In this document: positions 5,763-63,347 of the stretch, one piece after another | Layout: the number at the start of each line of letters is the position of its first letter | Position numbering within the stretch: the stretch's first letter is position 1 | Assembly (NCBI GenBank): GCA_002104905.1 | Contig: MCFE01000138.1 | Span: 62,001-126,000, forward strand | Length of the DNA: 64,000 nt | Direction of reading: 5' to 3' | From: Basidiobolus meristosporus CBS 931.73 | Lineage: Eukaryota; Fungi; Basidiobolomycota | Notes under the pieces: model-generated | What the model was told of the DNA's origin: nothing | Database searches by the model: none | Seen by the model: the letters and a program-made list of their open reading frames with translations, nothing else | Made by a program: the position numbers and the translations under genes

Positions 5763-6131
5763 TGTTACAAGTCTTGGTATAAGAGTTGTAGAGGAATAGG
5801 GGAGTTTAGCCAGTATTGTATTCACTAAAACTTAAACTGATTTTTATTAAGGTTCCAGCAGCTCCTTATATACATTTTGCCAGATCAATTGCTGACTAAT
5901 TGTATTTCCTAACATAGGTTGTGGCTGATGACTCATTTGATTGCATCATCATCACCCAATAAGATCCTACTTACTATATCTATTTCTGTCTGATAAGGGT
6001 CTGCTGATTCATTTGCTGACTAATGCTACTGATTTCATAGTTAATTTTGATATACTGATAACCTAAACATATACTAATTGATTTGACTAAAAACTGATCT
6101 AATATAAACATTCAAGCGGCAGATCATAACA
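5763..6131 (-). repeat. 3' LTR of the Gypsy element (369 bp)
   Basis: TG...CA termini (tgttac...ataaca), adjacent to the PPT; paralogous to 2571-2940. Confidence 0.85.
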
Positions 6132-6141
6132 TTCTCCCTTA

Positions 6142-38994: not shown

Positions 38995-39303
38995 GCCAAC
39001 AATGAACCATTAAAATCATGTGCACCAACATACTATGAACTAAAGTCCCCAGACGCCTATCGATTGCCAGACAACGCTCACACAAATTCTGCGCAGAACA
39101 CTGAGACACTTTCCAACCAGAATCAGTACGACCAGGTGCAGCAAGTGGATCAAACATTGTACCAACCAACTGCGCCGACATTTGTGCAATCGTTTACTCC
39201 CGACGAGGATGACACTCATGACTCGAGTGACGACGACGATCAACCATCGTGTAAACGTTGTCAACGACGCTACTGTAGACGTGGATACAGAGGCGGCTAT
39301 TGA
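38995..39303 (+). pseudogene. Secreted family A paralog A1, signal-peptide region missing
   Basis: Has TLSNQNQYDQVQQVDQTLYQP and an RRGYRGGY tail; homology to A4 begins only at ~38995. Confidence 0.7.
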
Positions 39304-39970
39304 TATGAATAAGTTTAATAAATAAGATAATGTAATATATAACCGACATCACTCCAGTTTCTGACAATTGACACTAGGAAAAGTCACAAAAGAGACATGA
39401 CCACAGGGATGGGTGGAACAATGGCGAGTATGAACAGATGTTGAAGTAAGGGAAAGAGCCGATCAAGCGCCAATTTGCACAATTACAATAGGGATGCATA
39501 TTAGTTATGTGCTGGTAATGGTAGTGAGCAATAGTTGGGCTTTGGTATTTTCTCACTCTGCTGATACCAATAAGTATGAGTCAAAAGTTCCAGATTATTG
39601 GACTTGACACGCACCGAATTCTCCTTACATTATGATGGATTCTACCCTCTATAATAGCTGATTCTAGCTTGGAATGGCGATACACTCAAGGAGACCCAAT
39701 TTCCATATTGACTAAACCCATAGAAAACTTATTGAATAAGCTACCCATTACCTTCCAGCAGTACTTCAAGACGTTTCTCACCCCTCTCCTGGATTAGTCG
39801 ATGGACTTTGGGTCATCAGAGGGAAGTGCGGAAATTGGCATGGTGATGAGTTTGTCAAATACCCTTGTTTTCATGATGGTAACGACTATATTTCTGTTAT
39901 CACGTAAAAGGCGAAAAACAAAATGAATAATGGGACTTTATTGGATTTGGGCTCAAGTGCAGTCGGTGTG

Positions 39971-40549
39971 TCATTGAGTGTCTTCCATGGGCTCAGTATA
40001 CTGTGAGTCCTGATCAGCACAGTCATCGCCACATTGAACATCTTCCATGGGCTATGTGTACTGTGTATCTTGGTCAGAGCATCCTTCAACGCATTGGGTG
40101 TCTACTACTGGTGTGGAGTATGTCTCATCTTGTGCAGGCTGAACCATAACAATGGGGTAACCAGAGCCATCTTCGGAGTGTTCAGCACCCTTCTGTTTGG
40201 CGTACTCGGATGCGCTGGCTGAGCCTTCTACTTCGAGACTAGGGCCTGCTTGAAACTGAACATCGAGAATCTTGTCACTGTTGGCGTTGGCAGTGTTCAG
40301 ATTGTCATGCTTTCTGGTCACGGTGGTGAACACCTGACGCAACAATGGCACTTGGACGTTTAGCGTTTCAACAGAGGGCTGAGCCTGGGCTTGCTGGTAG
40401 CAGTTGCTTGCTTGGTCCGAGCATGAATACCTGCGATAACGGACTCTTCTATGCTCACGGTTGCATGATTCGGAGCATGGGACTGGAGCAGAAATGGTGG
40501 CTTGAAGTGAAGCAAGGCCCAAGATCAATGATACAATAAATGTACGCAT
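39971..40549 (-). pseudogene. Secreted family B paralog B1 (192 codons, one late stop; may yield a 165-aa product)
   Basis: Signal peptide MRTFIVSLILGLASLQATISA; GAG to TAG at 40052-40054; the frame continues to the same stop as B2. Confidence 0.8.
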
Positions 40550-40869
40550 CTTTGAGAACTACTGAGTTCATTGCTGAATTCACTCTGGAATATATAGCAT
40601 GGGAACCATCATAACACGGTTACTACATTGATGGTAGCAATAGTTAGTTAACTTTGATCAGATCTTAAATTAGCATTCCCTCTACCATCATCGACTCAAT
40701 CGCATTGATATCGCGTGGTTTCCATGATTACAGTACGATAAATACACCAATATATACACATATGCTTTTGATAATATTTCACCTGTAGTAGGGTAATTCA
40801 CGAATCACGGCTGATGATGTTTCATATTAATATAGGGTGACCAAATGAAATGTTTATTTAATCAATGTA

Positions 40870-41412
40870 TCAATTCCCACTGAAATATCTGATCTTGAAG
40901 TACTTATGTGCCGACCTCTTGTACTTCTTCTGGCCTCCGCCATAGCTATGGGCGGCTGGCTGGGTGATGATGATCCGGGGCTGTTGCTGCTTAGGCTGAT
41001 AGAGGGTCTGGTCGATAACCTGCGCTTGGTCAAACTGATTGGAGTTTGACAGAGCATCAGCATCACTGGATGAGTGAGCGTTCACTCTGTCCAACAATGC
41101 CTTTCTTGGCTGCATGTCGGCTATATTGAAGTTAGGCATGTTGTAGGATGACTCTGGCTGAGTTGAAGTGTCATCCATTGAGTCTTCACCTTCGCCTTCA
41201 TCTTCACCCCCATTCTCACCCATATAGTCATCACCCTCGTCCTGTTCCGGCTGATAGTCATCTGCAGGCGATTGAGTTTCTTGGTAGCAAGGACTTACTT
41301 GCTCCCCGCACAAACTGTCACCATAGCTAACCTGAGAAGAGGTATCTTCTGTGGCAGGGAATGCATGGATAGAAGCAAGGTACACTGCGAGTAAAGTCAG
41401 AGTAAGCTGCAT
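40870..41412 (-). CDS. Secreted family C protein C1, 180 aa, uncharacterised
   Basis: Signal peptide, acidic N-half, N/Q core, basic C-terminus; open frame; paralog at 57455-57979. Confidence 0.88.
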   Translation of the reverse strand: MQLTLTLLAVYLASIHAFPATEDTSSQVSYGDSLCGEQVSPCYQETQSPADDYQPEQDEGDDYMGENGGEDEGEGEDSMDDTSTQPESSYNMPNFNIADMQPRKALLDRVNAHSSSDADALSNSNQFDQAQVIDQTLYQPKQQQPRIIITQPAAHSYGGGQKKYKRSAHKYFKIRYFSGN

Positions 41413-42350
41413 TTTGATGAATAGCGTAAAACCAGTCGTAAGCTCACTTTATAGTGGTAGTTGGCATAGTCTACTATACTACACCCTATATCTGACTCAC
41501 TTGAGGCCATGAATTCACATGCTATGTCCTGCTTCTGTTGCCCATCAACTAACGACTTGTGAAGATATGAGCTCACAAAGATAGACAAAGGTAGTCCCTT
41601 AATCAACCAATGGTGTTTATTTTGTTCTATTACAATATAGTGTTTCTCCAGTTGTAGGACGTTCATCCTTGGCCCTATTAGTCGGTGATCATTGATTCAA
41701 ACAACCATTTAGATATTGGCATGGTTTAGTTATTAGCAATCAAGTTAGATTAGCTTTAAGAACAAATGGTATGGATAATCGAGATTTATTGAATTAAGTG
41801 CGGTTGTCGGTACATTGAGTGTCTTCCATAACGTCAGCATATGCCAGCAAAGTGATGGCGACTTGAGGTGGTTGATGCAATGCATGATGCTAAATCGTAA
41901 ATCTAGCTCAGTATACTACCAAATGATGACTGGTAAAATATCAATTCATTCATAATCCCAAAACACTCACTAAGATTGCTACAGGTTACTATATAACAAG
42001 AGTAGCTTAGCGCCCTTCGACAATGAAATCAAGAACTACATAAGAACGAAGCCATTCCTGTGTGCTCACCTCAAGCCATTCCTGTGTGCTCACATTTTGG
42101 TTTGTCCCTTCACTACCGCATATGTCATTCCAAAGTGGTATAGCAAGCCCAGAATTGAAGAGGAATGTACTGAAGTGATTGGTCGCCTGGATTACGGTTT
42201 CAATCAACCCCTATTCACTGATGATTAACTTTACTCACCTTTGCTTCATAATTTAGTAAACTGGGTTTGGTAGCTGATGATCGTTGATGAATCTAGCAAA
42301 CCATACATAAAAGCAGCTGCTTGCCTTCCAGTGTGTCATCAAAAGCCAAT

Positions 42351-42757
42351 ATGCAGCGCACTTTCCGCATTCTATCCGCCTTTGTATTCCTATTCGGTGT
42401 ATCTTATGCATCGCCCATTGCAACGTATGACAACTAGCAAATAGACCAATGGACTTTGGTGGCAATGCCGACAATGGACCATTAGTGTCATATGCACCAA
42501 CATACTGTCAACTAGAGTACCCAAACGCCTATCCATTGTTGGACAACGCTCAGACGAATTCCGCACAGAACGCTCAGGCACTTTCCAACCAGAATCAATA
42601 TGAGCAAGTGCAGCAAGTAGATCAGACATTGTACCAACCATCTGCATCGACATATGTGCAATCATTTACTCCCGATGAGGATGACACTCAAGACTCGAGT
42701 GACGACGACGATCAGCCATCGTGTGAACGTAGACGTAGATACAGAGGCGGCTTTTGA
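42351..42757 (+). pseudogene. Secreted family A paralog A2
   Basis: MQRTFRILSAFVFLFGVSYASPIATYDN followed by TAG and a frameshift before the 42449 ORF; otherwise collinear with A4. Confidence 0.8.
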
Positions 42758-42784
42758 CTCAATCGGATCATGTAAACACTAGTT

Positions 42785-42862
42785 TGGCATTCATAATAAA
42801 TCCTATCGTATATGGCATTCATAATAAATCCTATCGTATATGGCATTCATAATAAATCCTAT
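42785..42862 (+). repeat. 28-bp tandem triplication containing AATAAA, downstream of A2
   Basis: tggcattcataataaatcctatcgtata starts at 42785, 42813 and 42841; single copy at the paralogous site ~46723. Confidence 0.9.
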
Positions 42863-43265
42863 AAAATAATCGCTACTTCTGTAAACTATCCAACACACAC
42901 ATTTCTTCTGCAAACAAGATTACACCAACTGACATCAGAGGAGACGTGACCACAGGGATGTGTGGAATGAGCATCACGAACATTTTGGTTTTGTTCTCAC
43001 CAATTTGCGAACAATAATGATTAAACTACTAAAATGGAAGTGACAAGCAATCTACATAAATGAATGATGGTATAGGTAATGAAGTGCGTAGATCGATGAT
43101 ACATCGGTTTAATTGGCTGTGAATTGTTTATATACATATTTTTGTGGTTTGATGATTGGCCACATAGAATAGCTATCAACTTACTCAGCTGGGCTTCGGT
43201 TGCTGATGATTGCAGATAAACACAAAAGCAACTTTTTGCATCCCAGTGTGTAACTAAGTGCCAAT

Positions 43266-43652
43266 ATGCAACGTAATTTCCGCATTTTATCCACGCATTT
43301 TATCCACCTTGGTACTCCTATTCGGAGTATCCTATGCATCGCCTATTGCTACATATGGCAACCAATAGGTAGACCTGGGTGTCCAAGTGGACTATGAGAC
43401 TGAACCATCGATGCCATATGCGCCGACAGGTTACCAGCTGGAGTCCCCGATCACCTATCCCTTGTTGGACAATGTTGAAACTAATTTCGTACAGAATGCT
43501 CGGGCACTTTCCAACCATCTACGTCGACATATGTGCAATCATTTACCCCAGACGAGGATGAAAACCAAGACTTGGGTAACCACGATGATCAGCCATCGTG
43601 TAGACGTTGTCAACGACGCCACCGTAGACGTAGATACAGAGACAGCTATTGA
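43266..43652 (+). pseudogene. Secreted family A paralog A3
   Basis: 13-bp duplication in the signal region, premature TAG, and a 49-bp deletion between two ccaacca repeats that removes most of the core. Confidence 0.8.
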
Positions 43653-44318
43653 TGAAAACAGGTTGTTGGTATTTCTACATTTTATAACTGTTGTGATACC
43701 AGCATAATAAATGGGGTAATGTATCATATAATCGATGTCACACCAGTTTCCCTATTCATGTAGACTATCAAGTACACACAATTATCGTGCAAATAAGCTT
43801 TCAAATATGAACACTGAAAAAAATGTTACATAAGAGATGTGCCTACAGGGATGGGTGGAATAACGGCGAGTATCAACAGAGGTTGAAGTAAGGGAAAGTG
43901 CCGATCAAGCGCTAGTTTGCATAATTATAACACGAATCGCTCGTCTGTGGTGCATATAATATGTGCTCTCAGGATACCATGTTTTCTGGTAATGGTAGTG
44001 AGTAGTAGTTGGAATTCTTGAGATAGCGATACACTCTAGGATGCCCGATCTCCATATTGACTAAGCCCTCGTTGAGCTTATTAAATAAGCCACTCACTAC
44101 CTTCAAGCAGTACTTCAAGACGTTTCTTACCCTTCTCCTGAATTGGTGACTGGACTTCGGATCATCAGAGCGAAGTGTGGAAATAGGCTTGGTTTTAAGT
44201 TTGTCAAACGCTCTTTGCTCCCATGCTGTTAATGGCTATATTTCTGCTCACATATGAGGCGAAAAATAAAATGAATAATGGAACTTTATTGGATTTGGGC
44301 TCAAGTGCAGTCGTTGGT

Positions 44319-44897
44319 TCATTGAGTGTCTTCCATGGGCTCAGTATACTGTGAGTCCTGATTAGCACAGTCATCACCACATTGAGCATCTTTCATGGGC
44401 TCAGTGTACTGTGTATCTTGGTCAAAGCATCCTTCGATGCATTGGTTGTCCACTACTGGTGTGGAGTATGTCTCATCTTGTGCAGGCTGAACCATAACAA
44501 TGGGGTAACCAGAGCCATCTTCGGAGTGTTCAGCACCCTTCTGTTTGGCATACTCGGATGCGCTGGCTGAGCCTTCTACTTCGAGGCTAGGGCCTGCTTG
44601 AAACTGAGCATTGAGACTCTTGTCATTGTTGGCGTTGGCAGTGTTCAGATTGTCATGCTTTCTGGTCACGGTGGTGAACACCTGACGCAACAATGGCACT
44701 TGGACGTTTGGCGTTTCAACAGTGGGCTGAACCTGGACTTACGGGTAGCAGTTGCTTGCTTGGTTGGAGCATGAATACCTGCGATAACGGACTCTTCTAT
44801 GCTCACGGTTGCATGATTCGGAGCATGGGACTGGGGCAGCAATGATGGCTTGAAGAGAGGCAAGGCCCAAGATCAATGATACAATGAATGAACGCAT
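44319..44897 (-). pseudogene. Secreted family B paralog B2
   Basis: MRSFIVSLILGLASLQAIIAAPVPC... with an in-frame TAA at the codon that is CAA in B1; same 579-bp length as B1. Confidence 0.82.
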
Positions 44898-45236
44898 ATT
44901 TGAGAACTACTGAGTCCATTGCCAAGTACACTCGGGAATATATAGCATGGGAGCCATTATAACATGGTTGCAACATTGATGGTAGCAATAGTTAGTTAAC
45001 TTTGATGAACTCACGCTTTATCAGATTGAAAATCAGCATTCTCTCTAATATCGTCGACTCCATCGCATTGATATTGCGTAGTCTACATGATCAATGTACG
45101 ATAAATAAACCGATACATACACCAATAAATACATATATACTTATGATATTTCAGCCGTAGTATGGTGATTCACGAATCACGGCTGATGATGTTTCATATT
45201 GATTTAAGGTGGCCAAATGGCATGTGTATTTATTCA

Positions 45237-45750
45237 ATGTATCTGTTCTTGAAGTACTTATGCGCAGATCTCTTGTACTTCTGGCATCCACCACGGCTAC
45301 GGGTGGCTGGCTGGATGATGATGATCTAGGGGCTGTTGCTGCTCAGGCTGATAGAGGGTTTGGTCGACTACCTGCGCTTGGTCAAACTGATTAGAGTTCG
45401 ACAGGGCATCAGCATCACTGGATGAGTGAGCGCTCACTCTATCCAACAAGGCCTGTCTTGGCTGCATGTCGGCTATATTGAAGTTGGGCATATTGTAGGA
45501 TGACTCTGGCTGAGTTGAAGTGTTATCCATTGAGTCCTGACCTTCGCCTTCATTGCCGCCCTCATTCACATCCATATAGTTGTGATAATCTTATAATGAA
45601 TATACATTGATACCCTTGACTATCACTACTCCTATGACTCTATAATTTCAAAGCAACACAACACTCGGTTAATGTTACGACTTGAAGATTTATCTGGTGC
45701 AATAGAGGCCAATTGGGTATAGGCGATGTATGAAGCCTGTGAAGTGATGG
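45237..45750 (-). pseudogene. Secreted family C paralog C2
   Basis: Core ALSNSNQFDQAQVVDQTLYQP retained; start codon is ACG, the N-terminal region is disrupted, and the 3' end is frameshifted or deleted. Confidence 0.75.
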
Positions 45751-46290
45751 TGAGTTGCGTTTTTGCTAAACCTACCCAAGGTGGTTGATGCAATGCATAA
45801 TGCTAAATCGTAAATCAGGCTCAGTATACTATTGACTGATGGCTGGTGAAGATGTTAATTCATTCGTAATCCCATAACACTCACAAAGATTGCTACAGGT
45901 TGCTATATAACCAGAGTAGCTTAGCATTCTAAAACTATGAAATCAAGAAGACCGAAGCCATTCCTGTGTGCTCACCTCAAGCCATGAGTCACTTTCGCTT
46001 GTCCCTTTGCTACCGCATATGTCATTCCAAAGTGGTATAGTAAGACCAGTATTGAAGAGGATTGTTTATTTATTTTTCTTGATGTACTAACGTGATTGGT
46101 CGCCTGGATTACGGTGTTAATCAACTCTTACTCACTGATCATTGCAATGAAAGTGAAATGGTGATTAACTTTACTCACCTTTGCTTCATAATTTAGTAAA
46201 CGGGGTTTGGTAGCTGATGCGCGCTGATGAATCTAGCAAAGCATACATAAAGGCAACTGTTTGCCTTTCAGTGTGGCATCACAAGCCAAC

Positions 46291-46695
46291 ATGCAACGCA
46301 CTTTCCGCGTTCTATCATCCTTGGTATTCCTATTCGGTGCATCTTATGCATCGCCCATTGCAACCTATGACAACCAACAAGTAGACCAGGGCATCCCAGT
46401 GGACTTCGACAATGAGCCATTAATGTCATACACACCAACATACTATCAACTAGAGTCTCCAGACGACTATCCATTGTTGGACAACGCTCAGACTCATTCT
46501 GCACAGAACGCTGAGGCGCTTTCCAACCAGAATCAATATGAGCAAGTGCAGCAAGTCGATCAGACATTGTACCAACCATCTGCACCGACATATGTGCCAT
46601 TGTTTACTCCCGACGAGGATGACACTCAAGACTCAAGCGACAACGACGATCAGCCATCGTGTGAACGTAGACGTGGATACAGAGGCGGCTTTTGA
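46291..46695 (+). CDS. Secreted family A protein A4, 134 aa, uncharacterised
   Basis: ATG at 46291, signal peptide MQRTFRVLSSLVFLFGASYA, open frame, N/Q core, acidic linker, RRRGYRGGF tail. Confidence 0.88.
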   Translation: MQRTFRVLSSLVFLFGASYASPIATYDNQQVDQGIPVDFDNEPLMSYTPTYYQLESPDDYPLLDNAQTHSAQNAEALSNQNQYEQVQQVDQTLYQPSAPTYVPLFTPDEDDTQDSSDNDDQPSCERRRGYRGGF

Positions 46696-46994
46696 CTCAA
46701 TCCGATCATGTAAACACTTGTTTGGCATTCATAATAAATCCCATCATAAAATCGCTATTTCTGTAAGCTATCCAACATATACAAACAAGATTACACCAAC
46801 TGATATCAAGAAGAAACAGCGTAGACGTGACCACATGACAAGCAATAAGAATACTTCTGTCAGGCATATTGGACGGCAAAACCTATATGCTCACAGCATC
46901 ATGAACATTCTTTTAATGACTCCTCACATGATTCATTTTCGCTTTGTTCCCACAAAACTACGAATAATAACAAATAAACTACTAAAATGGAATG

Positions 46995-47045
46995 GTGGTG
47001 AGCAATCGTGGTGAGCAATCCTGGTGAGCAATCGTGGTGAGCAAT
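46995..47045 (+). repeat. 13-bp tandem repeat x4
   Basis: (g/c)tggtgagcaatc x4; only one related copy at the paralogous position ~43040. Confidence 0.9.
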
Positions 47046-47151
47046 AGATGGAAGATTGTTGATCAATGGTACATAGGTTCAATTGGCTGGGGATTGTTTG
47101 ATGATTGGGCACCTACAAGAGCTATCAACATAAGGAAAACTTTACTTAATG

Positions 47152-47222
47152 AAAACCAAGACTCGAATGAAGATGACAATCAGACATCATGTTACCGTAG
47201 ACGTAGATACAGAGACAGCTAA
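47152..47222 (+). pseudogene. 3' fragment of a family A gene (A5)
   Basis: ENQDSNEDDNQTSCYRRRRYRDS matches the A3 C-terminus. Confidence 0.65.
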
Positions 47223-47619
47223 TGATATGAACAGGCCTAATACTATTGTGATCCCACTACAATAAATAGGTCAATGGATCATGTAGTCATTACTACTCCT
47301 ATTCATGTAAGCAATTAGCAAGTAGAGCAGTCTCCGTACAATGCCATATATGCCGAACTACTGGAGTCCATTGCTTTACAGCTCTCAGGAACTTGACCAG
47401 ATATTGTATCAACTATCTGCGCCAGCTGACTTATCCATTTTGACTACTCAGAAAGGTACTACTGGCTGATATTGCGGGACTGCTTTATTCTGCTCTAACC
47501 TTACTCTTGTTCCTGTGCTGGCATGGATCATACTTCTGCTATTACATATTAAGCAAGCAATATATAATCAACGCAAATCTAATGGCTTTAAGGTCATTCC
47601 CCAGACTCAATATAGTGCT

Positions 47620-47850
47620 CATTTTGTTTAGCACACTCATTGCCATATTGGGCATCTTCCATGGGCTCTGTGAACTGTGTATCTTGGTTAGAGCATCCAT
47701 CAATATAACAGGTGTCTTCATCTGCTATGGAGTATGTCCTATATTGCACAGGCTGATCCATAACAATGAGGAAATATTTGTCATACCTGAATGAACTGTC
47801 TTTACCTTCTTACTCAGGCCAGGGCCTGCCTGGAACCTGACATCAGCTCT
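47620..47850 (-). pseudogene. Degenerate 3' fragment of a family B gene (B3)
   Basis: gggcatcttccatgggctctgtgaactgtgtatcttggttagagcatcc and caggccagggcctgcctggaac align with the B1/B2 3' half. Confidence 0.65.
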
Positions 47851-49899
47851 TCTGTCTATCCCCAAGAGTTAAAGGCTGGGATCTGTATCCTTAGGCTCAT
47901 AACTACCTACAATTGCCATATAAGTCTCTTATTTGTTGCAAACAACAATACTGCTCTCTATGCAGCCAAGATACATAGCCTCAGGCTGTGGCCTTCAGAG
48001 GTCTTCAGCCTGAGGCTTCAATATGTCTATAGTCTGCAAGCACAAACCTCAGTGACTAAAAGATCCCAATGGAGACCCTTTTATGCTGAAATCTAACTTC
48101 AGGCTTCCATCCACCAAGGGCCTGAATGTGAGGCTTTTACTTGCAAAAGTAGTTATTGGAGGTGCCTGTCCAATGATAGCCTTGGCTTGATGTCTGTATT
48201 TGCAAAAGCCATCAGTCTAGCATTCCTCTCCATAGGTGTCTCAACTTGAGGCACTCATTTATCAAGTACTGCAGCTCACTGATTACATTAGAAAAAGCCT
48301 TGACATTGAGCTTGTAATGGCCAAACCTGTATTTGTGGCTCTCTCAGACTAAAATCAAGGCCTGAAGCTCTAATCATCTGAAACCTGAGTTCAAGGCCTT
48401 GCAGAAACAAGCCTTGACTTAATGTCCTTGGAGGTTGACAATCTGAAACCAAGGCTCTTTCCAAATGGATATCTTGGCATGAGACTCACACTACCCACTA
48501 CTCTGAGTTGCTACCCCTAAATGTTGAAACACTCATGCCATCTTGTTGCCTGACTGAAAGTCTTCAAGCCTTTCAATGGTGCAATGATTTGCAATCTACT
48601 CAAAACAAATTTCTCCCTCAACCAAGACCTTTCAGCTAATACCATCCCTAGTAGACATCCCAGTAGTTTTGCTGCAAGGAAGAATTACAAGTGGTACTGT
48701 GATGCTATTTTTTTACCTAACAATGCATGAGATTTGCATATTCTTTTGGGTGAGACAATGTGGCCATAAATTAAGCACATAGAAGTGCTTATCACAGCAA
48801 TGGGGCTTGAGGCTATGAAGCATATATCAAGACCCCAACTTGAAGACAACAGTGATATAAGAAGCTGTAAATATTTTAAAGCTAAGTGTACCAATATATA
48901 AGATGCCATCAAGTATCTGCCATGTCATAGTCTTGCAGCAAGTGTACTCTTAGATTATCAGGACCCAAAGCCAGGTGATTTATATGCAACCTGCTCTTTA
49001 TGCAATATACAGGAGCCAGGCAAGTAGGTGAATGTCAGTTTATAATTGATACACTAAGGTAATATATTGGCAATGCCATAAACTCTCAGTCACTAAATGG
49101 CAGGGATGTTAAACCAAAGGCAATAGACCTCTCAAGAGCATGTTGATAGTCAGCCAGGGAGCCATGAGTACAAAGCTGGAAGACATCAAGTATCAGGAAG
49201 GGCACTACCCAAGCAGTAGCTGCATTGTGGTACTCATAAAGAAATGGGCAAAGAACCATATTCAGAATTAATGATACTGGCAGCAGTGAAGTTATGAGAG
49301 AATAGTTAGCTAGGCCAAATCATCAAGGTTCTAGTTATTGCTCAGTGTATCCATACAAGTAGACATCCATAACAGGGATGGTTATGGACCACTAAGAGGA
49401 GTGAATAAACAAATAATAGTCCAACCTTAAATACATGAGCGCCACTGCAAAGAATTCCTGCTTATGTACTGTACAACTGAGTGATTGTGGCTTTATAGTG
49501 CCATACTGTGCCACACAGTGCAGTATGCTCCCAGGTTCTAGTATGCTTAGTCTTTTCCAAGAGATTCTTTGTCATTGGGTGAAGGAAGTGAAGGTAGCTA
49601 GCATTCAGAACTTTGACAATTAAACTCCACTTGTGGATGTCAGGCATGTTTTAGGGCCAAGTTTGCAACCTACTTTGACCATGTAAAAAGTAATTTGTTG
49701 CTGCAGGAGGATCCAATCCGTGTTTGCCACCAGGACCCCACATTGATGCCACTGCAATACTAGCAAGTACTACTTGTGCTGCTCTCAATTGAGTTATGGA
49801 GGCGTTGTAATAGCATTGCTGACTAGACTTCTGATGTGGTACAGAACTTGGCAGTGCTTTGCAGTGGTTACAGTCATAATACCACAAACATGTGGCTTG

Positions 49900-51550
49900 T
49901 CAGTGTAGTACTTATAAACTTACTGTATGAGTTGCATTGCTGGTAAAATATGCCTTTCACAAATGTACATCTAGCTGCCATCACTTGGCAAAGAGTATCT
50001 GCTTAATATCTCAAAATACTCCCAGACTCCTGGCTAATAAACTTCCTTTCCCTACTCCATACTGGTCCTCTGTATGAGTGTAATGCCATTCCTTTTTGTG
50101 TAAATTGCTTTCAAAAGGTATTCAAGTTGGCTTGCATGCAAAAGTTACCTGACATACTTTGATATAGTTGTCTTCAGAAGTGATACTTTGTTGTTGTGCC
50201 AAGCCAGGCCTTGCCTTATTTGACTTACTACATGTTGTGCATCAACATTTAAAACTTAGCCAATTTTACTCCGTCTGAAAATCTAGTACCCTGACTGATT
50301 TTCCCTAACCCAAACATAACAAATTCCAGTTACAGTCTATTTTATCCCACCTCAGAATCTATTTTTAGCTATCACACCTGATCTATTTTCAAATGGTCAT
50401 TATGTTATCAACTTATCTGCCAAGCCTTCCCAGGTGATTAGTCATCTGAGATCTATCCAACCACTGTGCAGTTGCCAAGACATCAGTTGATTGTTGATGT
50501 AATTTTCATTTATCTTATGCACCTATGAACACCCAAATTGATTTCAATCAATCCAGTCCCTTGGCGCTTACTAATTCAACTTGATCAGAAAAGTATAAAT
50601 AAAGTTTACTGAACCTTTTGGTTTAGTGTGTGTCTCAACAAAATTAAGATTCTGTCTCAGCAAATATAAGAATCCAACAATTCCATTCTAGTCTCTATCC
50701 AAGCCTAGTATATCTAGCACTCCAAAGAACACCAAGCCTAGCCTGCCTAGCAAACAAATATCATTGTCTTTATAGCCAACCCAGCTATATCCAAGACCAA
50801 TATTGGATTGGAATCTTTCTGCTAATATTTTGCCACTCTCTGACAATTCTAAGATTCCGCACTTAATTGTCCCTTTGGTTCAGTTAAACCATTCAAGAGT
50901 TTATTACACTTTCTCTTGGATACAACACTACACATTTACTGAGGCTATTGTGCATTTCAATGCCAAAGGGATATCTGCTTACTTCTTGTCCACTGTACTT
51001 GATGTTCCTCCATCAGTCACTCTGTGGATTGCAGATGTACTTGAATGTAGTATTTCTCATGGGACTTGCATATGGCAGAACCTGTAATTTTTTTTGCTTC
51101 CTATCTCCTTACATATCCACACCTTAGGAGACTCTAGGCAAACATACATCTGTGTTCTCTAAGCATCTAGTAGAAAGTAGAGTAACCATACATCAGAGAT
51201 TTATATATTCATACTTATGCTTGCAGCAAAACCTCCCAGGTCTTGTTGAAAGCTCTTTACATAAAATCAATAAATGAATCAAATTACCATTGGTTGGCAG
51301 CTTTTTGGCACTTTCTCCTACACTGTCAACATATGATGCTCAATGCTTCCAATGAACCCAGAGTAAAGTAGCTTTAAATGGCTAGTGAGATGAATATGTA
51401 TGTAGCATCTCCAAAAGAGTTAAGTGCCTTGTGGATAATAATGGACTTTGCCACACATATATGTATCTTAACTGAAATATTCTGTAGCTAGTAGTAAGTA
51501 TTAGATGTACCTACTGCTCTGACATTTATAGCAATTAGATAGAACATGTT
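49900..51550 (-). mobile_element. Degenerate CACTA transposase fragments split by a solo LTR
   Basis: 50933-51090 matches 32040-32200, and 51340-51370 (caatgcttccaatg, HWKH) matches 32470-32500. Confidence 0.55.
50233..50927 (-). mobile_element. Solo LTR (695 bp) with perfect 5-bp TSD CTACA
   Basis: TGTTG...CAACA termini; CTACA at 50228-50232 and 50928-50932; inverted relative to 51861-52556. Confidence 0.92.
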
Positions 51551-51860
51551 TGGCCAGAACTGCATCCAGTACCTCAGTACCTGAGCTTCAACTCAAGGGA
51601 CAGTCACTGAGAGTACACAAGGATACAAGTGTGCCCCTGTAACAAGCAACAAAAGAGGCATTATCATCAGGTGTTTAACTTTGCTTGTCACAAAGCTTAG
51701 TTGAATGCAATCTAGCAATCAGGTATATGACTAAAGACAAAATATCACCTAGAGATGCTCTCTCAGCTCAGTACCAAAGATATAATCATAATATAGTAAT
51801 ATTGCTCTATTAGTAGCCTACAACATGGTATCAAGCAACTCTACTGATAAAGTAAGTCAG

Positions 51861-52556
51861 TGTTGTGTTTAAGAGAGAGGTGTGATAAGACTCTTGAATG
51901 GTTTAACCAAACCTAAGTGACAACTAAGTGCAGAATCTTAGAATTGTCATAGAGTGGTGGAAATATTAGCAGAGAAGTTCTGGTCTGATATTGGTCTTGT
52001 ATATAGCTGGGTTTGGCTATAAAGACAACAGAGTTGGTTTGCTATGCAGGCTAGGCTTGGTGTTCTTGAAAGTGCTAGATACGCTAGGCTTGGGTAGAAA
52101 CTTGCACAGATTTGTTGAATTCTTGATTTTGCTGAGACACAATCTTAAATTTGTTGGGACACAAACTAAACCAAAATGTGCAGTAAGATTTGATTATATT
52201 TTTCTGATCAAGCTGAAATAGTAAGTGAAAAGAGACTGGACTAGTTGATATCAGTATGGATGTTGACAGGTGCATAAAATAAATGAAAATTGCATCATTG
52301 ATCAGCTGATGTCTTGGCAACTGCTGAGTTAGATAGATCTCAGAAGACTAATCACTTGGAAAGGCTTAGTAGATCAATTGAGGACACAATGTCCACAAGA
52401 AAATTGATCAGGTGTGACAGCTAAAAATAGATTCTGAGAAGTGATAAAATAAACCATAACAGGGATTAGTTATGCTTGGGTTAGGGAAAATTGGTTAGGG
52501 TCCTAGATTTTCTAATAAGGTAAAATTGGCTAAGTTTTAATTGTTGATGCACAGCA
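51861..52556 (+). mobile_element. Solo LTR (696 bp) with perfect 5-bp TSD GTCAG
   Basis: TGTTG...CAGCA termini; GTCAG at 51856-51860 and 52557-52561. Confidence 0.92.
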
Positions 52557-55349
52557 GTCAGTACTATAGAGTACCTGAGATATTGCAGAGGCACTGATGC
52601 ATTGACCATTGGCTTCCTTTGTTTCCAGCCATGCACTCTGAATGTATCCTCTATCTCATTCACTAGCCCAGGTCAAGTACATCATTGACTAAGTGTAACA
52701 AATTAAACAGTGGAAGTATAAAGCTGGTGTGCAATACTTAAACTGGTAATATGGTATTACTTGCATGCACTCAACATATCTTTGGCACAGCTGTATGCAT
52801 TACTCTCTGAGCAGAGGGAGCAAAGTGCAGCTACAGCAAAAGGAGCACTACTTTGCTGTTGTAATTCACTGATATGCAGCTATAATCACCCTATTATGCT
52901 TGCATTGAGGTATATAGGGTGACCTTGTTGGCAGTAAGTGTATACATATGGAGGTCATTAGGGGTCTGTTGACCAGCATAAGCACTTAGTGTAAGCCCAT
53001 TTGGTATTGCTCTTAAACTCCAGTACAGCAATTTGTTCACAATGAAAAATAGCTACCAGAGAGCTTAGTTGGATAATGTACACAATTGTTGGTGCCTTTT
53101 GCATCCTTCTCATCCTAGTTATAGTATTAATGCTTTGAGAAAAAGAACAAGAAAGGACCATCTGAGTACCATAACATTTCAGCTGAGTACAAAGTCTCAC
53201 TTAACTTACAGTGGTCACCATGTAAGATACTAGCTATTTGGCAGACATACTTTTCAGGTGGAAACAAAACCAACTAGAATTAATACCAAATCCAATCATC
53301 AGCTACTCTCTACTTGCTACTATAGTTGCAGCTAGAAATCTAAAGGAAAAACACCAGCAGAATGCCAGCAAAATATCATTGGAATGCCAGTAGAATACCG
53401 GCTGATTATCAGATGAGTTCCAGGTCTGGGATATCTCATAGCAATGTGACATCTATGCTTTCTTTACACCTAGGTTGTTATTTACAAATCTTTGAGAGCT
53501 CTAGCCATTGATCTTGTATAGAGTCACTCAGCAAAAGTATCAGATATCTAAGACATGAAATATCTGAGAGTTGACATAACAGCTGCAAGCTTTGCACACA
53601 TGTTCTTAGAACCATCATCATTGAATTCTTCATGTTTGCATTGCCAAGACCATGTTGAAGCAAAGATAATACTCTTACGTTTGATGAATGATTAGGAGCA
53701 GACCACAAGTTTTACTTGTTCTCCCATTCACTTCCAGTATCTCTGAGACTCTTGAAATATTACACTCTATAATCTGCACAACCACTCTTATTTTCATCAA
53801 ATTTGCTTATGTTCAACTATTTGTGTCCTCACAAGAGCCCAAGTACTTCTTCAGCCTACACACCGGTGCTTTTACTTTGCAAGTTATATCACTACACCTT
53901 TGACATCTTGAGTTTGTTGCTTAGTTTAATTCCTAGACTTTTGAATAGTGTTGGTTTTGCCATTGTTGCCTTGCCTGAAGTCAAACAAGTCATCTTATTA
54001 GCCATATAGATGCTGTTGTTCAAGGCTGCACAACTGAGTACTATTGGAGTGACCAATGTGAGCTACCAAAGGTTCACTATGTGTTCCTCAGGTGCCCAAG
54101 CCAACTAAGCAGTATGAAGTGCTGTGATAGCAGCACTGAGCACAGTTGTCTGGTTAATAGAACTTCTCCATTATATGGATTGACAAGTACTCATCATTGT
54201 CAGAATTAAAGTCATTGTCCTAGTCAAAGCACATCATTTATTCAATCAGGCCATCAGTCTATACTTCAAAGCTGGAACTTTCAAGTTGTTCAAGTCTCTA
54301 AAGTGTTGCGTCAGCTGTGGGCTAAGTATTGGCATTGTAGGTGCAGTGACAAGCTGAGATGATAGATCCAGATTGAGGATGCAATCACTGCAACGGTGGG
54401 AAGAAAACTGAAAGCAATGTCAGTACATCTGACACGGCAGGTTTGTTCATTCACTTCAATGAAGCCTTGTTGGATGAGGAATAGATGTACGGTAACACTA
54501 CGCATCCTCAATATTTCAGTGTCTGCGTTCATATGCTAGGCAAACTCCATACATTCTGATGAATCATCGTGTAGATCTTCTATGCTACTCCGTCATAAGA
54601 TGAGCTATAGAAAATTGAGTTGGTAATCTCCAGTATAACGGTGTCAAACACTTTTCTTCCGGATTGCGCATTTTCTTTGGAGCATCTACTTACCCATTGG
54701 CCATAGTTATTGAGATGGGATTGTGGTATACAGCATTTTATGCAAAGTTGTGTGCCCACTTAAACATTCAGTTATGTGATCCCACTCTTGATTTAGCCTG
54801 AGTGTTGCTATTTCTTAAAAATGAACCTTATGCCTAGCTGGTGATTCTCGTAAGTGAGACAGTGCATACACGAAATAGTAATCAGCATTTAATGTCAACC
54901 AAATGCTTTATAGTATAAAGCTAGAAGTAGATCTGAAAAAAGAGAAAGGCGACGTTGGCGATAGTGATGCTTAGATGTTCTTGGCGCAACAGTTCGAGTC
55001 CTTAGTACGTGTCTGATATTCGGAGCCACTACAACATGACTTAAGCGTTAGTAAGAGTGGCCGAATGATACTTATATGCTGCCCTTGTATATTGTTGATG
55101 TGACACCACTTTGTGCTGCATATCCAATACTATACGAGATAATCCCTACTCCACCATGCCACTAAATTCCTTGAAAGTTACTGTTTCCGCACTTGCTCCT
55201 CTCCCGCAGCAATCTTTGTTACAACCGCAAATATCATTACCGCCCTTTTGCTGGGTAACCCCACAGACTAGGCTTAAGTTCTCCAGGCTTTTTCTGTCTT
55301 CTAAAAGCGACCCAGGGCGACAAAAAATACGTCAATCCCATTAGTTGCA

Positions 55350-55600
55350 TCAAGAACACGCTTTGCCACGCTTCCACTCTGTGTACCTAGGCTTTGAGAA
55401 AGCTCCTGGATCATCCTCACGCATTCTGCGAACCTTACTTCCTGTCCAGAATGAAGATGCAAATTCTTCACTACACGTCTTTACGTTTTTATATAGCTCT
55501 ACATACTCGGGGGTTGCCGTAGTATTGGGTCGGTTGCGTTCAAGAGGAGCGGCAAAAGAGGATGCAAGTATCATAGCACTGGCTAAGAGGATATCTTGAG
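55350..55600 (-). CDS. Possible small secreted protein; start and exon structure unresolved
   Basis: Hydrophobic ILLASAMILASSFAAP leader downstream of TATAAA; CpG-retaining; a Cys-rich frame lies downstream (~55150-55300). Confidence 0.3.
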
Positions 55601-56130
55601 TAGACACTCCTCTACAGCCTTTATATTCGTTATTATATCTTCTTGGTTTGTAAGTCACACAACATGCAACTTTAATATTAATCACGCTTGGGAAGAACCC
55701 AGGGATGATTTAAACAGTCTAGTTCATCCGGTATAAAGTAGCACTTTTCTAGGATTGGATTCATTACTAAGCCGTATCTCTTACATTTGTGCATCGATAA
55801 CAACAGTGTCGTGAACGACCATTACTCACTACTCAGTATCATCTAGACAATTGCTCCGTTTACAACTGGTTTATTGACCATTACATAGGAAAAGATCTAT
55901 GTACTTCGTCTTTGAGGCATCCATTGAATTTCAGTTTAATTTAGTCTGCCAAACCCGGGATTTTGTATTTATTGATCGTAAATTCAATTGCCATATCTTC
56001 ATTATGAAAAGACACTGATGGGTAACGACAAAACAATAGGTAAAGATACTTTATGCTGCTTGCTTCGAGTGATGGTAGTACTTCAAGAATATTTCCTTTC
56101 AAACTCTTTCGTATGGACTAAGTACAAGCT

Positions 56131-56212
56131 GGTGAGGTGGCCGAGTGGTCTAAGGCGCTGCGTTCAGGTCGCAGTCTCTTCGGAGGCGTGGGTTCGAACC
56201 CCACCCTCATCA
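56131..56212 (+). tRNA. tRNA-Leu(CAG), intronless
   Basis: Acceptor stem GGTGAGG/CCTCATC, D-loop TGGCCGAGTGG, anticodon stem CTGCG/CGCAG with loop TTCAGGT, long variable arm, GGTTCGAACC T-loop, TTTT at 56217-56220. Confidence 0.97.
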
Positions 56213-56582
56213 TCTATTTTACTCTTAGCTTGCACAAAAATGATAAGAGGAAATATCACAATGCTAACAGTCACTGAGCAGTCTGTCAATCTCGAATCTT
56301 TGTGTTACCTAAGTCAATCCGGTAACCCTGCCAGACACACTCTCTAATATCAAACTTTTCGGTGGAGGGCAGCATCACTAAAGACTGAGGGTGAGTATGT
56401 TAGTACGTAAGCGAAAATCTAATATTAATGCCCGCAGCTCTGATCATGATACAGGTGTGTGCAAGTAAAAAGCTAATCACAAGTAACAACAAGTATAAGA
56501 ATGTCATTTGGATTTTATTGATTGAGAATTTTCAGTTGTAGCGTGGTGATGACTACCTACATCTTCAGCTCATGTCATCGCA

Positions 56583-57080
56583 CTAATTGTATTGAACGTT
56601 TTGCTCTGGACAATCTTCTACGCATTGCATCTCTGCCACAGGGGTTGTGTATTGTATATCTTGGGTGGGCTGCATCAGGACGTAGGGAGAGAAAGAACTA
56701 TCTTCCAAGTGTTCCGCTCCCTTTTGCTTAGCATATTCTAATGCATTGGCCCTACCCTCCAGTTCGAGACTGGGCCCTGCTTGATACTTGACATTGAAGC
56801 CTTTGTTGCTGTTGGCGTTAGCAATGTTCAGGTTATCGTGCTTTCTGGTCACCGTGGTGAAAACCTGGCGCAATAACGGGGATTCGACATTCGTCGTCTT
56901 AACGACAGGCAAAACTCGAGCGTTTTGGTAGCAACCGCTCGCATACTGTGCACATGGTAAGCTGCGATAATGAACCCCTCTATACTCGCGAGTACATGGA
57001 GAAGAACAGCCGATTGGGGCAGCAACGGCAACTTGAAGAGCGGCAAGGCTTAGAATCACTGCTACGGTAGTAGAGCGCAT
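56583..57080 (-). CDS. Secreted family B protein B4, 165 aa, diverged paralog
   Basis: Signal peptide MRSTTVAVILSLAALQVAVA; 18-aa identity PLLRQVFTTVTRKHDNLN with B1/B2; conserved cysteines. Confidence 0.85.
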   Translation of the reverse strand: MRSTTVAVILSLAALQVAVAAPIGCSSPCTREYRGVHYRSLPCAQYASGCYQNARVLPVVKTTNVESPLLRQVFTTVTRKHDNLNIANANSNKGFNVKYQAGPSLELEGRANALEYAKQKGAEHLEDSSFSPYVLMQPTQDIQYTTPVAEMQCVEDCPEQNVQYN

Positions 57081-57122
57081 GCTGAAGAATAGCTGAGAAA
57101 TAAGCTAGTTGCATAGGCCGCT

Positions 57123-57136
57123 ATATAGCATGGGAG
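57123..57136 (-). promoter_or_regulatory. Conserved TATA-containing motif of B genes
   Basis: tatatagcatggga (reverse TCCCATGCTATATA) lies ~43 bp upstream of the ATG in B1 (40591), B2 (44941) and B4 (57123). Confidence 0.7.
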
Positions 57137-57454
57137 GCTATATAATAAGGTTAAGTCGAGGGCATAAAGTGAGTCTTGTTAGATTGCGCATGTTTTCCAT
57201 TCTGTTATTGACTTTATCGAGGAAGCCTGTAACATATAAAACACATGCACTGGAATGACAGCCTCTGTATATATATATATGGTTCTATCACCGCTGCCCA
57301 TACTTCTCTTCAATACTCACAATGACATTGTGTACAACGATAAGTGCCACTGTTTCTGTGTGTGCATATCAGAAAATTCTTGAGTACTTGTACATCATCA
57401 GCATACCGAGTAATATGTTGCTCATTTTATTTCGTAAGTTTACTTTTACTAGAC

Positions 57455-57979
57455 TTAATGTCTGTTTCCACTGAAATATCTAACTTTGAAGTGGCGACGA
57501 GCAGATCTCTTATACTTCTTGTACCCACCTCTAAGCGCACGCGCTGCTGGCTGAGTGATGATAATTTGTGGCTGTTGCTGCTTGGGCTGGTACAGGGTTT
57601 GATCAATGACCTGCGCTTGGTCGAACTGGTTTGAGTTGGACAAGGCATTGGCTTTACTGGAGGAATGGCCATTGATTTTGTCCAGCAAAGCTTGGGATGG
57701 TTGAAGATTGGAAATATCGAACCCTTGCAACCCAGAGAATCCTGGCTGCTCACCCGAAGTCTCGCTTGTCTGCATTGGCTCACTCATCTCCGAATCATCC
57801 CCCTCCTCAGTTGACGGCTGGTATTCTTGACTGGGGGCCGAAGTGTCCTGATAACAAGCACCCTGTTGTTCGACGCATGGCTCATTGGTGAAGGCTACCT
57901 GGGAGTCACCGAGTGGGGTAGCGGAGATTGCTTGCAACGAAGCGATGGCGGAAGCTAGCAAGAGGAAGGAAAGCTGCAT
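57455..57979 (-). CDS. Secreted family C protein C3, ~174 aa from MQLSF, diverged paralog
   Basis: Signal peptide; 26-aa identity ALSNSNQFDQAQVIDQTLYQPKQQQP with C1; basic C-tail. Confidence 0.88.
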   Translation of the reverse strand: MQLSFLLLASAIASLQAISATPLGDSQVAFTNEPCVEQQGACYQDTSAPSQEYQPSTEEGDDSEMSEPMQTSETSGEQPGFSGLQGFDISNLQPSQALLDKINGHSSSKANALSNSNQFDQAQVIDQTLYQPKQQQPQIIITQPAARALRGGYKKYKRSARRHFKVRYFSGNRH

Positions 57980-60162
57980 GACTGGCTGGTGGAGTCTCAT
58001 GCGAATTTTGACGATTTATATCACCTCGATCCCACTCAATTAGGCTTTGTTCATAGCACTAGCTTTATGCGAGCTAGATTGATTTAACCTTTGCTACTTT
58101 ACCTCTTCGTACCAAGGCTTCAAAGTGTGAAGAATGAGGGAGATCTGGTCAATGATATCCTTAATATCGTTCAAAATTCTCTCAGTTTTTGCAATAACTA
58201 TCCGTGTTAGTAAGGACTTTGGTAATTTTTTACTAATGAGCTTGAGGGTTACCGTCGAGAAAGTCCAAGGTCATTGCGGTCAATTTCAATGGGGTTTGGT
58301 ACTCCTTTGTATCAGTGTAGTACTGTAAGCTTAACATGCACTTTTGGTATTGTTATTCCATCTTTAAGGCAAGTATCTCTTACGATAGTCCTGTCATTGC
58401 CTGGAAGGTATTGTCCTTTGGTAGTGCTGTTTTCTTGCTATACACATGCTTAAATATATTGCTGATCTGACCCTGCCTCAACTGGAGAGCAGCCACCACA
58501 GTCAAGCTTTGGGGCAGGCTTATTAAATTAACCTGTTATTACAAGAACCTAGGGTTGTCGCTGATTGGTGAACAATACGACTGTCATGGGGTGTACAGCA
58601 CAGTACAGGCGAGAATAAATTGATCAGCTGTTTGCCAAGAGTTGGGGATATTGAGTGGATAGTGCTTGGGATAGTTGAGGCTGCCTTGGAATTTCTTGTT
58701 GTAGTACACGCGTTTTCAATTAGTTATTTGTCAAGAAACAAGCCAAATGTGACTGTTCACTTTATTCGTGTTACGCTTTATCTATGCTGCTACAATCGAT
58801 AGCTTGGATGGCGATGCTTTCTTGCAAGACACATGCACTTATCTATTGCAAACTTTACCCTGCCACAGATGGAGTACAGCGTCGGATTAAGAGCTCAGCC
58901 ACCGACTACCACGGTCATTCTTTTGGGCAGGTCGATTATTTAACCTGTTATTTCAAGAACAGACTCATTGCTGATTGGTGCAAATCCTTGTCACCAATGA
59001 CCGGCATGGTGCATAGAGACGGTGCCGGCAAGAAGGAAATATTCATGGATGTGTTTAGCTAGTACTGGTTTCCTCAGGTAATGTTGCAGATTTGGCCTCA
59101 ACTGTAACCATTCATGATTTCTGGATCATTTCTCCAAGCTTGGCCTAAGACTCAGCACTTTAGGTGGGAAGCCGCTATACTTAGTAGAAAAGGGCACATG
59201 AAGCAGCCAACACTAAGCCACCACCTGGATAAGGTGATATAAAGCAGCAGGTGTGGGCTTGTCAGTCTCAAGACTTATTGCACTCCACTTTCTCAGCCAT
59301 GGTATCCGATCAAGAAGCCCGTTTGTATTCTGCCGATGTCAGAGAAGAAATTGCCAGAGCCAAGAGAGCTAACAACGGGAACTACGCCTCAGTCACAGTC
59401 AAAGGGATTCGCTGGACTTGGAGAGGACCCGGAACTGGCGAGCTGTCCTTCAAGCAGATCCTCGAAGGAAGAAAGGGGACCGCCTGCGTGGATAGCCAGA
59501 CATGGGTAATCTCGTAGGGTTTGGTTGGTGCCTACTTAGCCGGTGGACTCTTGGAGATATTGCTGTTATGGATATTTAGCTGAAGCATTGTGAAATAAAT
59601 GAGTTCAAATCCGCGTTCCTTTGACCCAGCTGTATTATGCTCATTGCACTGTGAGCATCTAACATATGTGTGAACTGCTACTTTGATCAGATATACGTGT
59701 ACAACTGCCGTGTACAGGCATCCGTTCCAGCAATCAGTATCGTGTTGCACGCTCCGCACTTCTGAAGACAATCCTTTTCTGTTGCGGTCAATATGATATG
59801 GCACCCCTGAGGTCTTTGCTTTTGCCTTAGTAGCGTTGGCTTCCTTTAGAAAAGGCTTTGTTTAATTTCTGTTACCAAACAACCTAGAACTCAACGTATA
59901 TCCTAAATAACCTTGAGACCGTTAAGCATCTATCAGCCGGACGCCACTTTGAATCTGCAACAGCTATTGCGCTGATCTTTGTAAGTGCTGAAGAAATCAA
60001 CGTGTTTCTAAGCAGGAAACATAGATTATCTAGAACTCTTATTTTGAGTACTCCTGCAGCCATATAGGTATTTTGCTAGATTTGTTTTACCCTGATATCA
60101 CGCAAATACTGTCTATTGGCAGTTTATGTATTTGGGAGCTTGCCTGTAGTCTAAGTGATCCT

Positions 60163-60593: not shown

Positions 60594-60776
60594 TTAATCA
60601 TCAGATACAGCATCTTTGGCCAGACTTGCATCCAGTGTCCCAGAACACGGATCTCCAACGCACAAGGAGCCTCTTGAGTTCCCTTGGGCTTGGCACGAGA
60701 GAGCATCTACGGAGCCGGAACTGGAGCTGGCCACAAGGAAGGCGACCATCAAGGAGACTGCAAATTTCTTCATCAT
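60594..60776 (-). pseudogene. Defensin-like peptide copy 1, frameshifted
   Basis: Matches copy 2 up to GSLCV; a 22-bp deletion at an AAC microhomology then removes Cys3 and shifts the frame. Confidence 0.88.
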
Positions 60777-61874: not shown

Positions 61875-62072
61875 TCAGATACAGCATCTCTGGCCGGACT
61901 TGCATCCGGTATCCCAGAGCACGGATCTCCAACCGGTGGGGCAGCTACCGGAAACGCACAAGGAGCCTCTTGAGTTCCCTTGGGCTTGGCACGAGAGAGC
62001 ATCTACGGAGCCGGAACTGGAGCTGGCCACAAGAAAGGCGACCATCAGGGAGACTGCAAATTTCTTCATCAT
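61875..62072 (-). CDS. Secreted six-cysteine beta-defensin-like peptide, copy 2
   Basis: Signal MMKKFAVSLMVAFLVASSSSGSVDA plus LSCQAQGNSRGSLCVSGSCPTGWRSVLWDTGCKSGQRCCI (C-x10-C-x4-C-x12-C-x5-CC); TATATA ~55-60 bp upstream. Confidence 0.85.
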   Translation of the reverse strand: MMKKFAVSLMVAFLVASSSSGSVDALSCQAQGNSRGSLCVSGSCPTGWRSVLWDTGCKSGQRCCI

Positions 62073-63149: not shown

Positions 63150-63347
63150 TCAGATACAGCATCTTTGGCCAGACTTGCATCCAGTATCCCAGAACACGGA
63201 TCTCCAACCGGTGGGGCAGCTACCGGAAACGCACAAGGAGCCTCTTGAGTTTCCTTGGGCTTGGCACGAGAGAGCATCTACGGAGCTGGAACTGGAGCTG
63301 ACCACAAGGAAGGCGACCATCAAGGAGACAGCAAATTTCTTCATCAT
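63150..63347 (-). CDS. Secreted six-cysteine beta-defensin-like peptide, copy 3
   Basis: Same layout; the mature peptide differs from copy 2 by one residue (L/F). Confidence 0.85.
   Translation of the reverse strand: MMKKFAVSLMVAFLVVSSSSSSVDALSCQAQGNSRGSLCVSGSCPTGWRSVFWDTGCKSGQRCCI

Follow-up and report, generated by a model that had tools for sequence, protein, structure and literature searches.

Several described systems resemble, in part, the secreted protein families A, B and C encoded in a 64,000-nucleotide stretch of the genome of Basidiobolus meristosporus CBS 931.73 (contig MCFE01000138.1; hereafter the window, whose own numbering is used for its features). The curli subunits CsgA and CsgB are likewise secreted and Gln/Asn-rich, with more than one proposed subunit type encoded side by side. 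Curli, however, have five imperfect repeats of the form Ser-x5-Gln-x-Gly-x-Gly-Asn and a dedicated export machine, whereas the proteins considered here have one module each, lack the pattern and any predicted strands, and bear no sequence relationship to curli. HET-s and HELLP are also fungal, short and polar-rich, but they are cytoplasmic, contain two 21-residue pseudo-repeats and are paired with nucleotide-binding leucine-rich repeat receptors (NLRs), in contrast to the signal peptides, single module and lack of an NLR neighbour found here. Anionic-propiece/cationic-peptide precursors (defensin, cathelicidin and myticin types) share with A, B and C a signal peptide and separate acidic and basic Cys/Tyr-rich blocks. 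Sandcastle-worm cement and mussel foot proteins, which are secreted and disordered with charge blocks, Tyr- and Lys/Arg-rich segments and multi-copy genes, offer an analogy, without homology. Kex2-processed repeat proteins and the Ustilago repellents are fungal secreted precursors as well, but they hold tandem repeats parted by Lys-Arg within one protein, whereas each gene here encodes one module. B. meristosporus ranks as the richest strain in Kex2-processed repeat proteins (PMC7329392); A, B and C were excluded from that class, since their alignments reveal only a single module, without conserved dibasic flanks around M1 or M2.

The best database matches of the three families are hypothetical proteins of B. 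meristosporus CBS 931.73. Basidiobolus is an early-diverging, gut-associated (frog-gut) fungus and occasional pathogen, and its secreted proteins are almost unstudied. Here we describe two modules: M2, which is common to A and C, and M1, which belongs to B. They are encoded by neighbouring genes in B. meristosporus and occur together in single chains of its sister species Basidiobolus ranarum.

Sequence modules of families A, B and C

Copies were located by tblastn with the intact genes, giving four of A, four of B and three of C in a window that is sparse in open reading frames (ORFs) and has ~41% G+C. Both tblastn and the ORF list agree with the positions given in a preliminary description of the window. 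Only A4, B1, C1, B4 and C3 among the 11 copies are intact ORFs. A4 (46291–46695, + strand; 134 residues; identical to database protein P0056) runs from a signal peptide through an acidic N-terminal part, M2 (hidden Markov model (HMM) match at 46474–46578) and an acidic stretch to a short basic tail. In C1 (40870–41412, − strand; 180 residues) the signal peptide is followed by a Cys-x6-Cys motif, an acidic body, M2 (HMM match at 40993–41112, E 2.2e-27), an Ile-rich stretch and a basic Tyr/Lys/Arg tail. B1 (40052–40549, − strand; 165 residues) comprises a signal peptide, a basic four-Cys N-terminus, M1 (HMM match at 40223–40351, E 1.5e-30) and an acidic C-terminus with a Cys-x3-Cys pair, and ends earlier than the 192-residue copies of a second locus, L006. 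The signal peptides of all three families look typical on inspection.

The preliminary description held that one hidden core is common to A, B and C, a claim that stands for A and C. The cores of A4 and C1 are identical at 21 of 35 positions (60%; shuffle z-score 10.9), and BLASTP aligns A with C at E 6e-12 over this region and nothing outside it. Comparison of the two family profiles with hhalign returned 98.2% probability (E 2.8e-14) over 47 columns, and an HMM of the A core matches every C protein, and vice versa, at 1e-12 to 1e-17. Judged by these alignments, A and C are homologous over M2 alone, a module of ~40–47 residues that ends in a conserved DQTLYQP; its LL anchor is not invariant outside the C family.

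For B, the same claim rested on a chance-level alignment. The five shared positions that had been listed (L1, L2, L16, N20 and P35) are literally present, but BLASTP produced no alignment between the B core and the A/C core. With hhalign, A and B aligned only over a 12-column Arg-rich stretch, and C and B over a short N-terminal motif, Cys-x6-Cys-Tyr-Gln (E 1.2e-4), of which the Cys-x6-Cys part recurs in both families; the cores were aligned in neither case. Module-only profiles of M1 and M2 that included B. ranarum sequences gave a probability of 0.3%. Once the LL and P anchors are set aside, the interior of the proposed ungapped alignment scores like shuffled sequence (z-score −0.4 to 1.0), so that its overall score derives from those anchors. 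The proposed register ranked only 2nd to 10th of 111 offsets, and the best offset of shuffled B was equal or better in 54–100% of trials; by both measures the alignment does no better than shuffled controls. That the B core is homologous to the core of A and C was thus rejected by BLASTP, by hhalign with profiles of families and of modules, by HMM cross-searches and by two designs of shuffling. The core of B is instead M1, a stretch of ~43–55 residues from PLLRQVFTTVTRKH to QAGPSLE.EG that, on these comparisons, is unrelated to M2, and the two are best treated as distinct modules. A relic of M1 was looked for in the N-terminus of A and not detected. The record is corrected accordingly: the apparent three-way core consists of a homology between two families and a chance match with the third.

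Both modules in single chains of Basidiobolus ranarum

In several proteins of B. ranarum, a single chain contains M1 followed by M2; two forms occur. The A-type form (P0055, P0087, P0090 and the product of L002 860–1642) has an A-like end in which an acidic stretch is accompanied by a Cys pair and often by an Arg-rich tail; the basic tail is absent from P0055. The C-type form (P0079, P0080 and P0083) has a C-like start and end, in the order Cys motif, M1, M2, tail. Gene length equals three times the protein plus a stop codon for P0055 (813 nt), P0079 (1086 nt), P0083 (879 nt) and P0087 (771 nt), which identifies these genes as uninterrupted ORFs and not merged models, and L002 860–1642 is a plain two-module ORF. 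The M1 of P0079 matches that of B4 in the window (E 2e-15), and its M2 and tail match those of C3 (E 6e-23). A tree of M2, built on 40 columns and of low resolution, places the B. meristosporus A proteins and the A-type two-module proteins from B. ranarum as sister groups (support 96/79), whereas two-module proteins of the C type fall with C (98/98). On L002, the A-type gene (860–1642, −) and a C-type gene (5900–6985, +) lie 4 kb apart and divergent, an arrangement that echoes the divergent C and A genes of the window.

M1 and M2 are thus joined in uninterrupted ORFs in B. ranarum and lie in adjacent genes in B. meristosporus, including the window. This is the pattern of Rosetta-stone pairs, in which two modules share one ORF in one species and occupy adjacent separate genes in a sister species, classically taken to argue for a functional link, although that term names an inference rule and not a protein family, and the direction here (fusion or fission) is unrooted because no outgroup carries the modules. 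A chimera of another kind occurs in B. meristosporus itself: at L005 26–1127 (MCFE01000194), the C-terminal part of B is joined in frame to mature C, with no signal peptide. The reading frame changes once in the upstream B part of this locus, where the public model P0077 places an intron, and the public C-into-B models P0010, P0020 and P0021 look like mergers of neighbouring genes. In the C-type proteins, the order of domains does not follow from simple C-into-B read-through, which favours tandem duplication with complementary loss of modules.

Spacers vary among relatives, from Asp/Glu-rich to Met- or His-rich. In P0076 and P0078 (B. meristosporus, on a 50-kb contig) and in P0079 and P0083, Met-rich or His/Lys-rich repeat spacers replace the Asp/Glu-rich body, and these Met- and His-rich runs may point to metal binding. 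P0076, the only multi-copy case, has three M2 copies in an unverified gene model.

Joint amplification of M1 and M2 genes

In B. meristosporus, the separate M1 and M2 genes have been amplified jointly, as C>B><A triads or C>B pairs. At least six triads, ~3.2 kb apart, occupy L006; L008 and L009 hold C>B pairs; and members of B and C clusters are found on eight further contigs with consecutive accession numbers. According to the database clusters from which copy numbers were taken, the system comprises more than 100 distinct annotated protein sequences, with clusters at 90% identity of 32, 23, 22 and 12 distinct sequences.

The window contains two segmental duplication units, one with B1, C1, the divergent C/A spacer and A2 (39668–42810) and one with B2, C2, the spacer and A4 (44017–46748). 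By blastn, 39668–41228 corresponds to 44017–45580 at 86% identity, and 41866–42810 to 45779–46748 at 83%. B4 and C3 form a second subtype, without an A partner; B4 is 60% identical to B1, and C3 is 57% identical to C1. B4 (56583–57080, − strand; 165 residues; M1 HMM match at 56754–56882, E 1.7e-31) belongs to the cluster of 23 members. The relatives of C3 (57455–58000, − strand; M2 HMM match at 57584–57703, E 5.2e-27) are annotated from the second Met, with 174 residues; one of this length on the same contig, P0122, falls in the cluster of 22. In the gap that separates the type-1 copies from B4 and C3, blastn revealed an inverted repeat of ~700 bp (50233–50929 and 51859–52556; 82% identical).

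The remaining copies are broken. A1 (38998–39303, +) is a partial A with M2 (HMM match at 39070–39168) that aligns by tblastn with A4 residues 40–126 at 76% identity; its signal-peptide region is not recognisable and the sequence upstream is unrelated. A2 (42351–42757, +) gives two tblastn pieces in different frames, with the frame change near 42446–42461; it is publicly annotated as P0069 with an intron, and the alignment row of P0069 skips the frame-change stretch. A3 (43294–43607, +) is degenerate and frameshifted, with tblastn pieces of 60–65% identity in two frames and the end of M2 lost from the ORF translation. B2 (44319–44897, −; M1 HMM match at 44571–44699) has an in-frame stop at codon 53 and a public model with an intron, P0036. 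C2 (45239–45581, −; M2 HMM match at 45345–45464) is a fragment recovered as tblastn pieces, with its N-terminus missing and a frame change ahead of the tail. B3 (47669–47856, −) is a short C-terminal remnant that matches B1 residues 92–165 by tblastn at ~40% identity; in this region, blastn matches 44359–44508 to 47625–47774.

Selective constraint

Substitution was evaluated by the Nei–Gojobori method, using the intact copies of the window, L006 and L007. The ratio of non-synonymous to synonymous divergence (dN/dS) is 0.12–0.34 for whole genes, 0.14 for M1 and 0.08–0.11 for M2; the tails differ, with 0.90 for A and 0.05–0.22 for C. All A, B and C genes are under purifying selection and the modules are their most constrained parts. 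The modules show synonymous divergence equal to or above that of other regions, and the constraint therefore acts on the protein; the same observation rules out DNA-level constraint or gene conversion as the source of core conservation. The earlier statement that conservation is highest in the core holds for both identity and dN/dS, although its counts do not: C1 and C3 are identical at 30 of 35 positions and B1 and B4 at 28 of 35, rather than 26 and 18.

Relatives and family assignments

A profile search with the C alignment against 1.84 billion representative proteins returned 28 matches, and all those looked up are from Basidiobolus. No relatives of M1 were found outside the genus in a word-indexed search, the only kind that covered this module. 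Pfam and Protein Data Bank sequence searches with the window proteins, their relatives and the two-module proteins gave nothing above threshold, which agrees with the earlier impression that no named family applies. The Pfam family Myticin-prepro (PF10690) was rejected, since B4 reaches 17.3 bits (E 0.0057) against a cut-off of 28.5 bits and B1 has no match. Automatic UniRef names (CBM1, C2H2-type, SCP and C3H1-type domain-containing) are attached to P0040, P0049, P0060, P0061, P0021 and others; Pfam scans of other family members found none of these domains, and the CBM1, C2H2 and SCP labels were set aside, as no such Pfam match occurs in B1, B4, P0032, P0046, P0058 or the queries from A and C.

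Proposed function and alternatives

The occurrence of M1 and M2 in cis in one species and in trans in another, together with their co-amplification, suggests that the modules act together. Our tentative reading, to which we give somewhat less than an even chance, is of a two-module secreted system found only in Basidiobolus and carried in tandem arrays, in which secreted M1 chains would associate extracellularly with M2 chains. The earlier proposal that A, B and C form one system is supported, on the grounds of co-amplification and the B. ranarum M1–M2 ORFs, and not of the core then proposed. Module recognition and charge complementarity might drive the association: the bodies of A and C carry ~−20 to −25 charges and their tails +3 to +9, and B, with its basic four-Cys N-terminus and acidic C-terminus, is their mirror image. 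We infer that the product may be an abundant extracellular material of the wall, spore surface, an adhesive or mucilage, with gene amplification serving dosage. The many near-identical copies under purifying selection hint at such a need for dosage, which would fit an abundant extracellular product.

A more specific version, which we regard as speculative and improbable, is that M1 and M2 form a split recognition pair that joins oppositely charged disordered chains into a new fungal extracellular material, such as a capilliconidial adhesive or spore-surface layer, with the B. ranarum and B. meristosporus forms reflecting fission or fusion between sister species. Basidiobolus does form adhesive-tipped capilliconidia (PMC13370150).

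Several observations weigh against the proposed association. L007 of B. ranarum has nine C-type copies without M1 in 11.7 kb, so that the modules are not always closely linked; a single segmental duplication unit could by itself account for the co-amplification; and, on inspection, the differences between types 1 and 2 in the two modules do not look compensatory. AlphaFold2 yields no fold for B or C alone, and a literature search found no paper on Basidiobolus secreted or wall proteins or on the locus tags of the system.

Somewhat unlikely, in our judgement, is that A, B and C are independent orphan small secreted proteins, directed for example toward gut microbes or the host, which became neighbours through repeated copying of one segmental unit in transposon-rich DNA, the two-module proteins being incidental domain shuffling. 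The duplication units do cover all three genes, the region is rich in transposons, L007 is a C-only array, and domain shuffling is frequent in the family, as in the L005 chimera. Yet both kinds of two-module ORF keep the M1-then-M2 order, intact in several copies, and both triads and pairs persist under purifying selection. Moreover, B and C of types 1 and 2 have diverged in parallel, to ~60% and 57% identity, and stayed adjacent.

We consider it unlikely, too, that these are pro-proteins that release a basic Tyr/Arg/Lys-rich end (the A or C tail, or the Cys-containing N-terminus of B) as a cationic host-defence-like peptide, with the acidic parts and M1 or M2 as conserved pro-regions that neutralise, fold or sort it. 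An acidic body and a basic end occur in all three families, and the sub-threshold resemblance of B4 to Myticin-prepro and the array of defensin-like Cys-rich peptides 2.6 kb away point in the same direction. A Lys-Arg pair also precedes the tail in the C and A proteins of B. meristosporus, but in all B. ranarum C copies it is Lys-Lys, and the A, B and C proteins differ from known anionic-propiece precursors in that the cleavage site is not kept between species. They differ further in their pattern of constraint, which is strongest on M1 and M2; the C tail is conserved under strong purifying selection and is not diversifying, and the A tail is nearly neutral and its basic part dispensed with in P0055. 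Release of a peptide would also fail to account for the retention of M1 and M2 in cis or in neighbouring genes.

The structural and compositional evidence bears on how the modules might assemble. AlphaFold2 with family alignments predicted no strands in C1 (mean predicted local distance difference test score 51.9) or B1 (38.5), the B1 model showing one short helix past M1; as the alignments are shallow, this is weak evidence for disorder. Positions 18–34 of M2 have no beta-type hydrophobic periodicity, the moment at 160–180 degrees lying below the shuffle mean, and weak helical periodicity (z-score ~2) occurs in M1 and part of the A core. The Gln plus Asn fraction is 0.37 in the core of A but only 0.23 in C and 0.20 in B, with 4–5 acidic residues. 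Native proteins have a single M1 or M2 match each and no internal repeat. Q/N-rich prion-like domains span at least ~60 residues, are enriched in Gln and Asn and are poor in charged residues; this class was rejected for modules of just 35–47 residues with the above composition. Low-confidence predictions without strands, the lack of beta periodicity and one module per chain leave an amyloid or solenoid unsupported, and with a B core not alignable beyond chance and C and B cores of ~20% Gln plus Asn with several Asp/Glu, it is very improbable that a common N/Q-rich 35-residue core stacks A, B and C as a beta-solenoid or functional amyloid into a mixed polymer, as was first proposed, even though the core is common to A and C, is the most constrained part and is 37% Gln plus Asn in A, and signal peptides and co-amplification would suit such a polymer.

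Neighbouring elements

Transposons flank the A/B/C cluster. They include Ty3/gypsy pol and gag (6142–9776, −), two PIF/Harbinger-type DDE_Tnp_4 transposases, one intact and one broken, each with a companion ORF (24739–25623, −, and 16636–17520, +), and a Transposase_21 (tnp2) ORF (32019–33632, −). A conserved 72-residue ORF (window 59251–59517, +; L008 8441–8659; L009 8443–8661) lies divergent from, and ~1.3–1.4 kb upstream of, each type-2 C>B pair. It ends in WVIS, as does the tnp2-type ORF, and type-2 pairs may therefore be copied along with a transposon fragment. Three tandem secreted peptides of 60–65 residues, with six Cys in defensin-like spacing and no Pfam match, are encoded on the − strand at 60594–60776, 61875–62072 and 63150–63347.

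Implications

With more than 100 sequences, purifying selection and no relatives found elsewhere, the A/B/C system probably does something important and specific to the genus. Its cis and trans forms provide a concrete hypothesis, that M1 binds M2, and may offer a case from nature in which one protein has been divided between adjacent genes.

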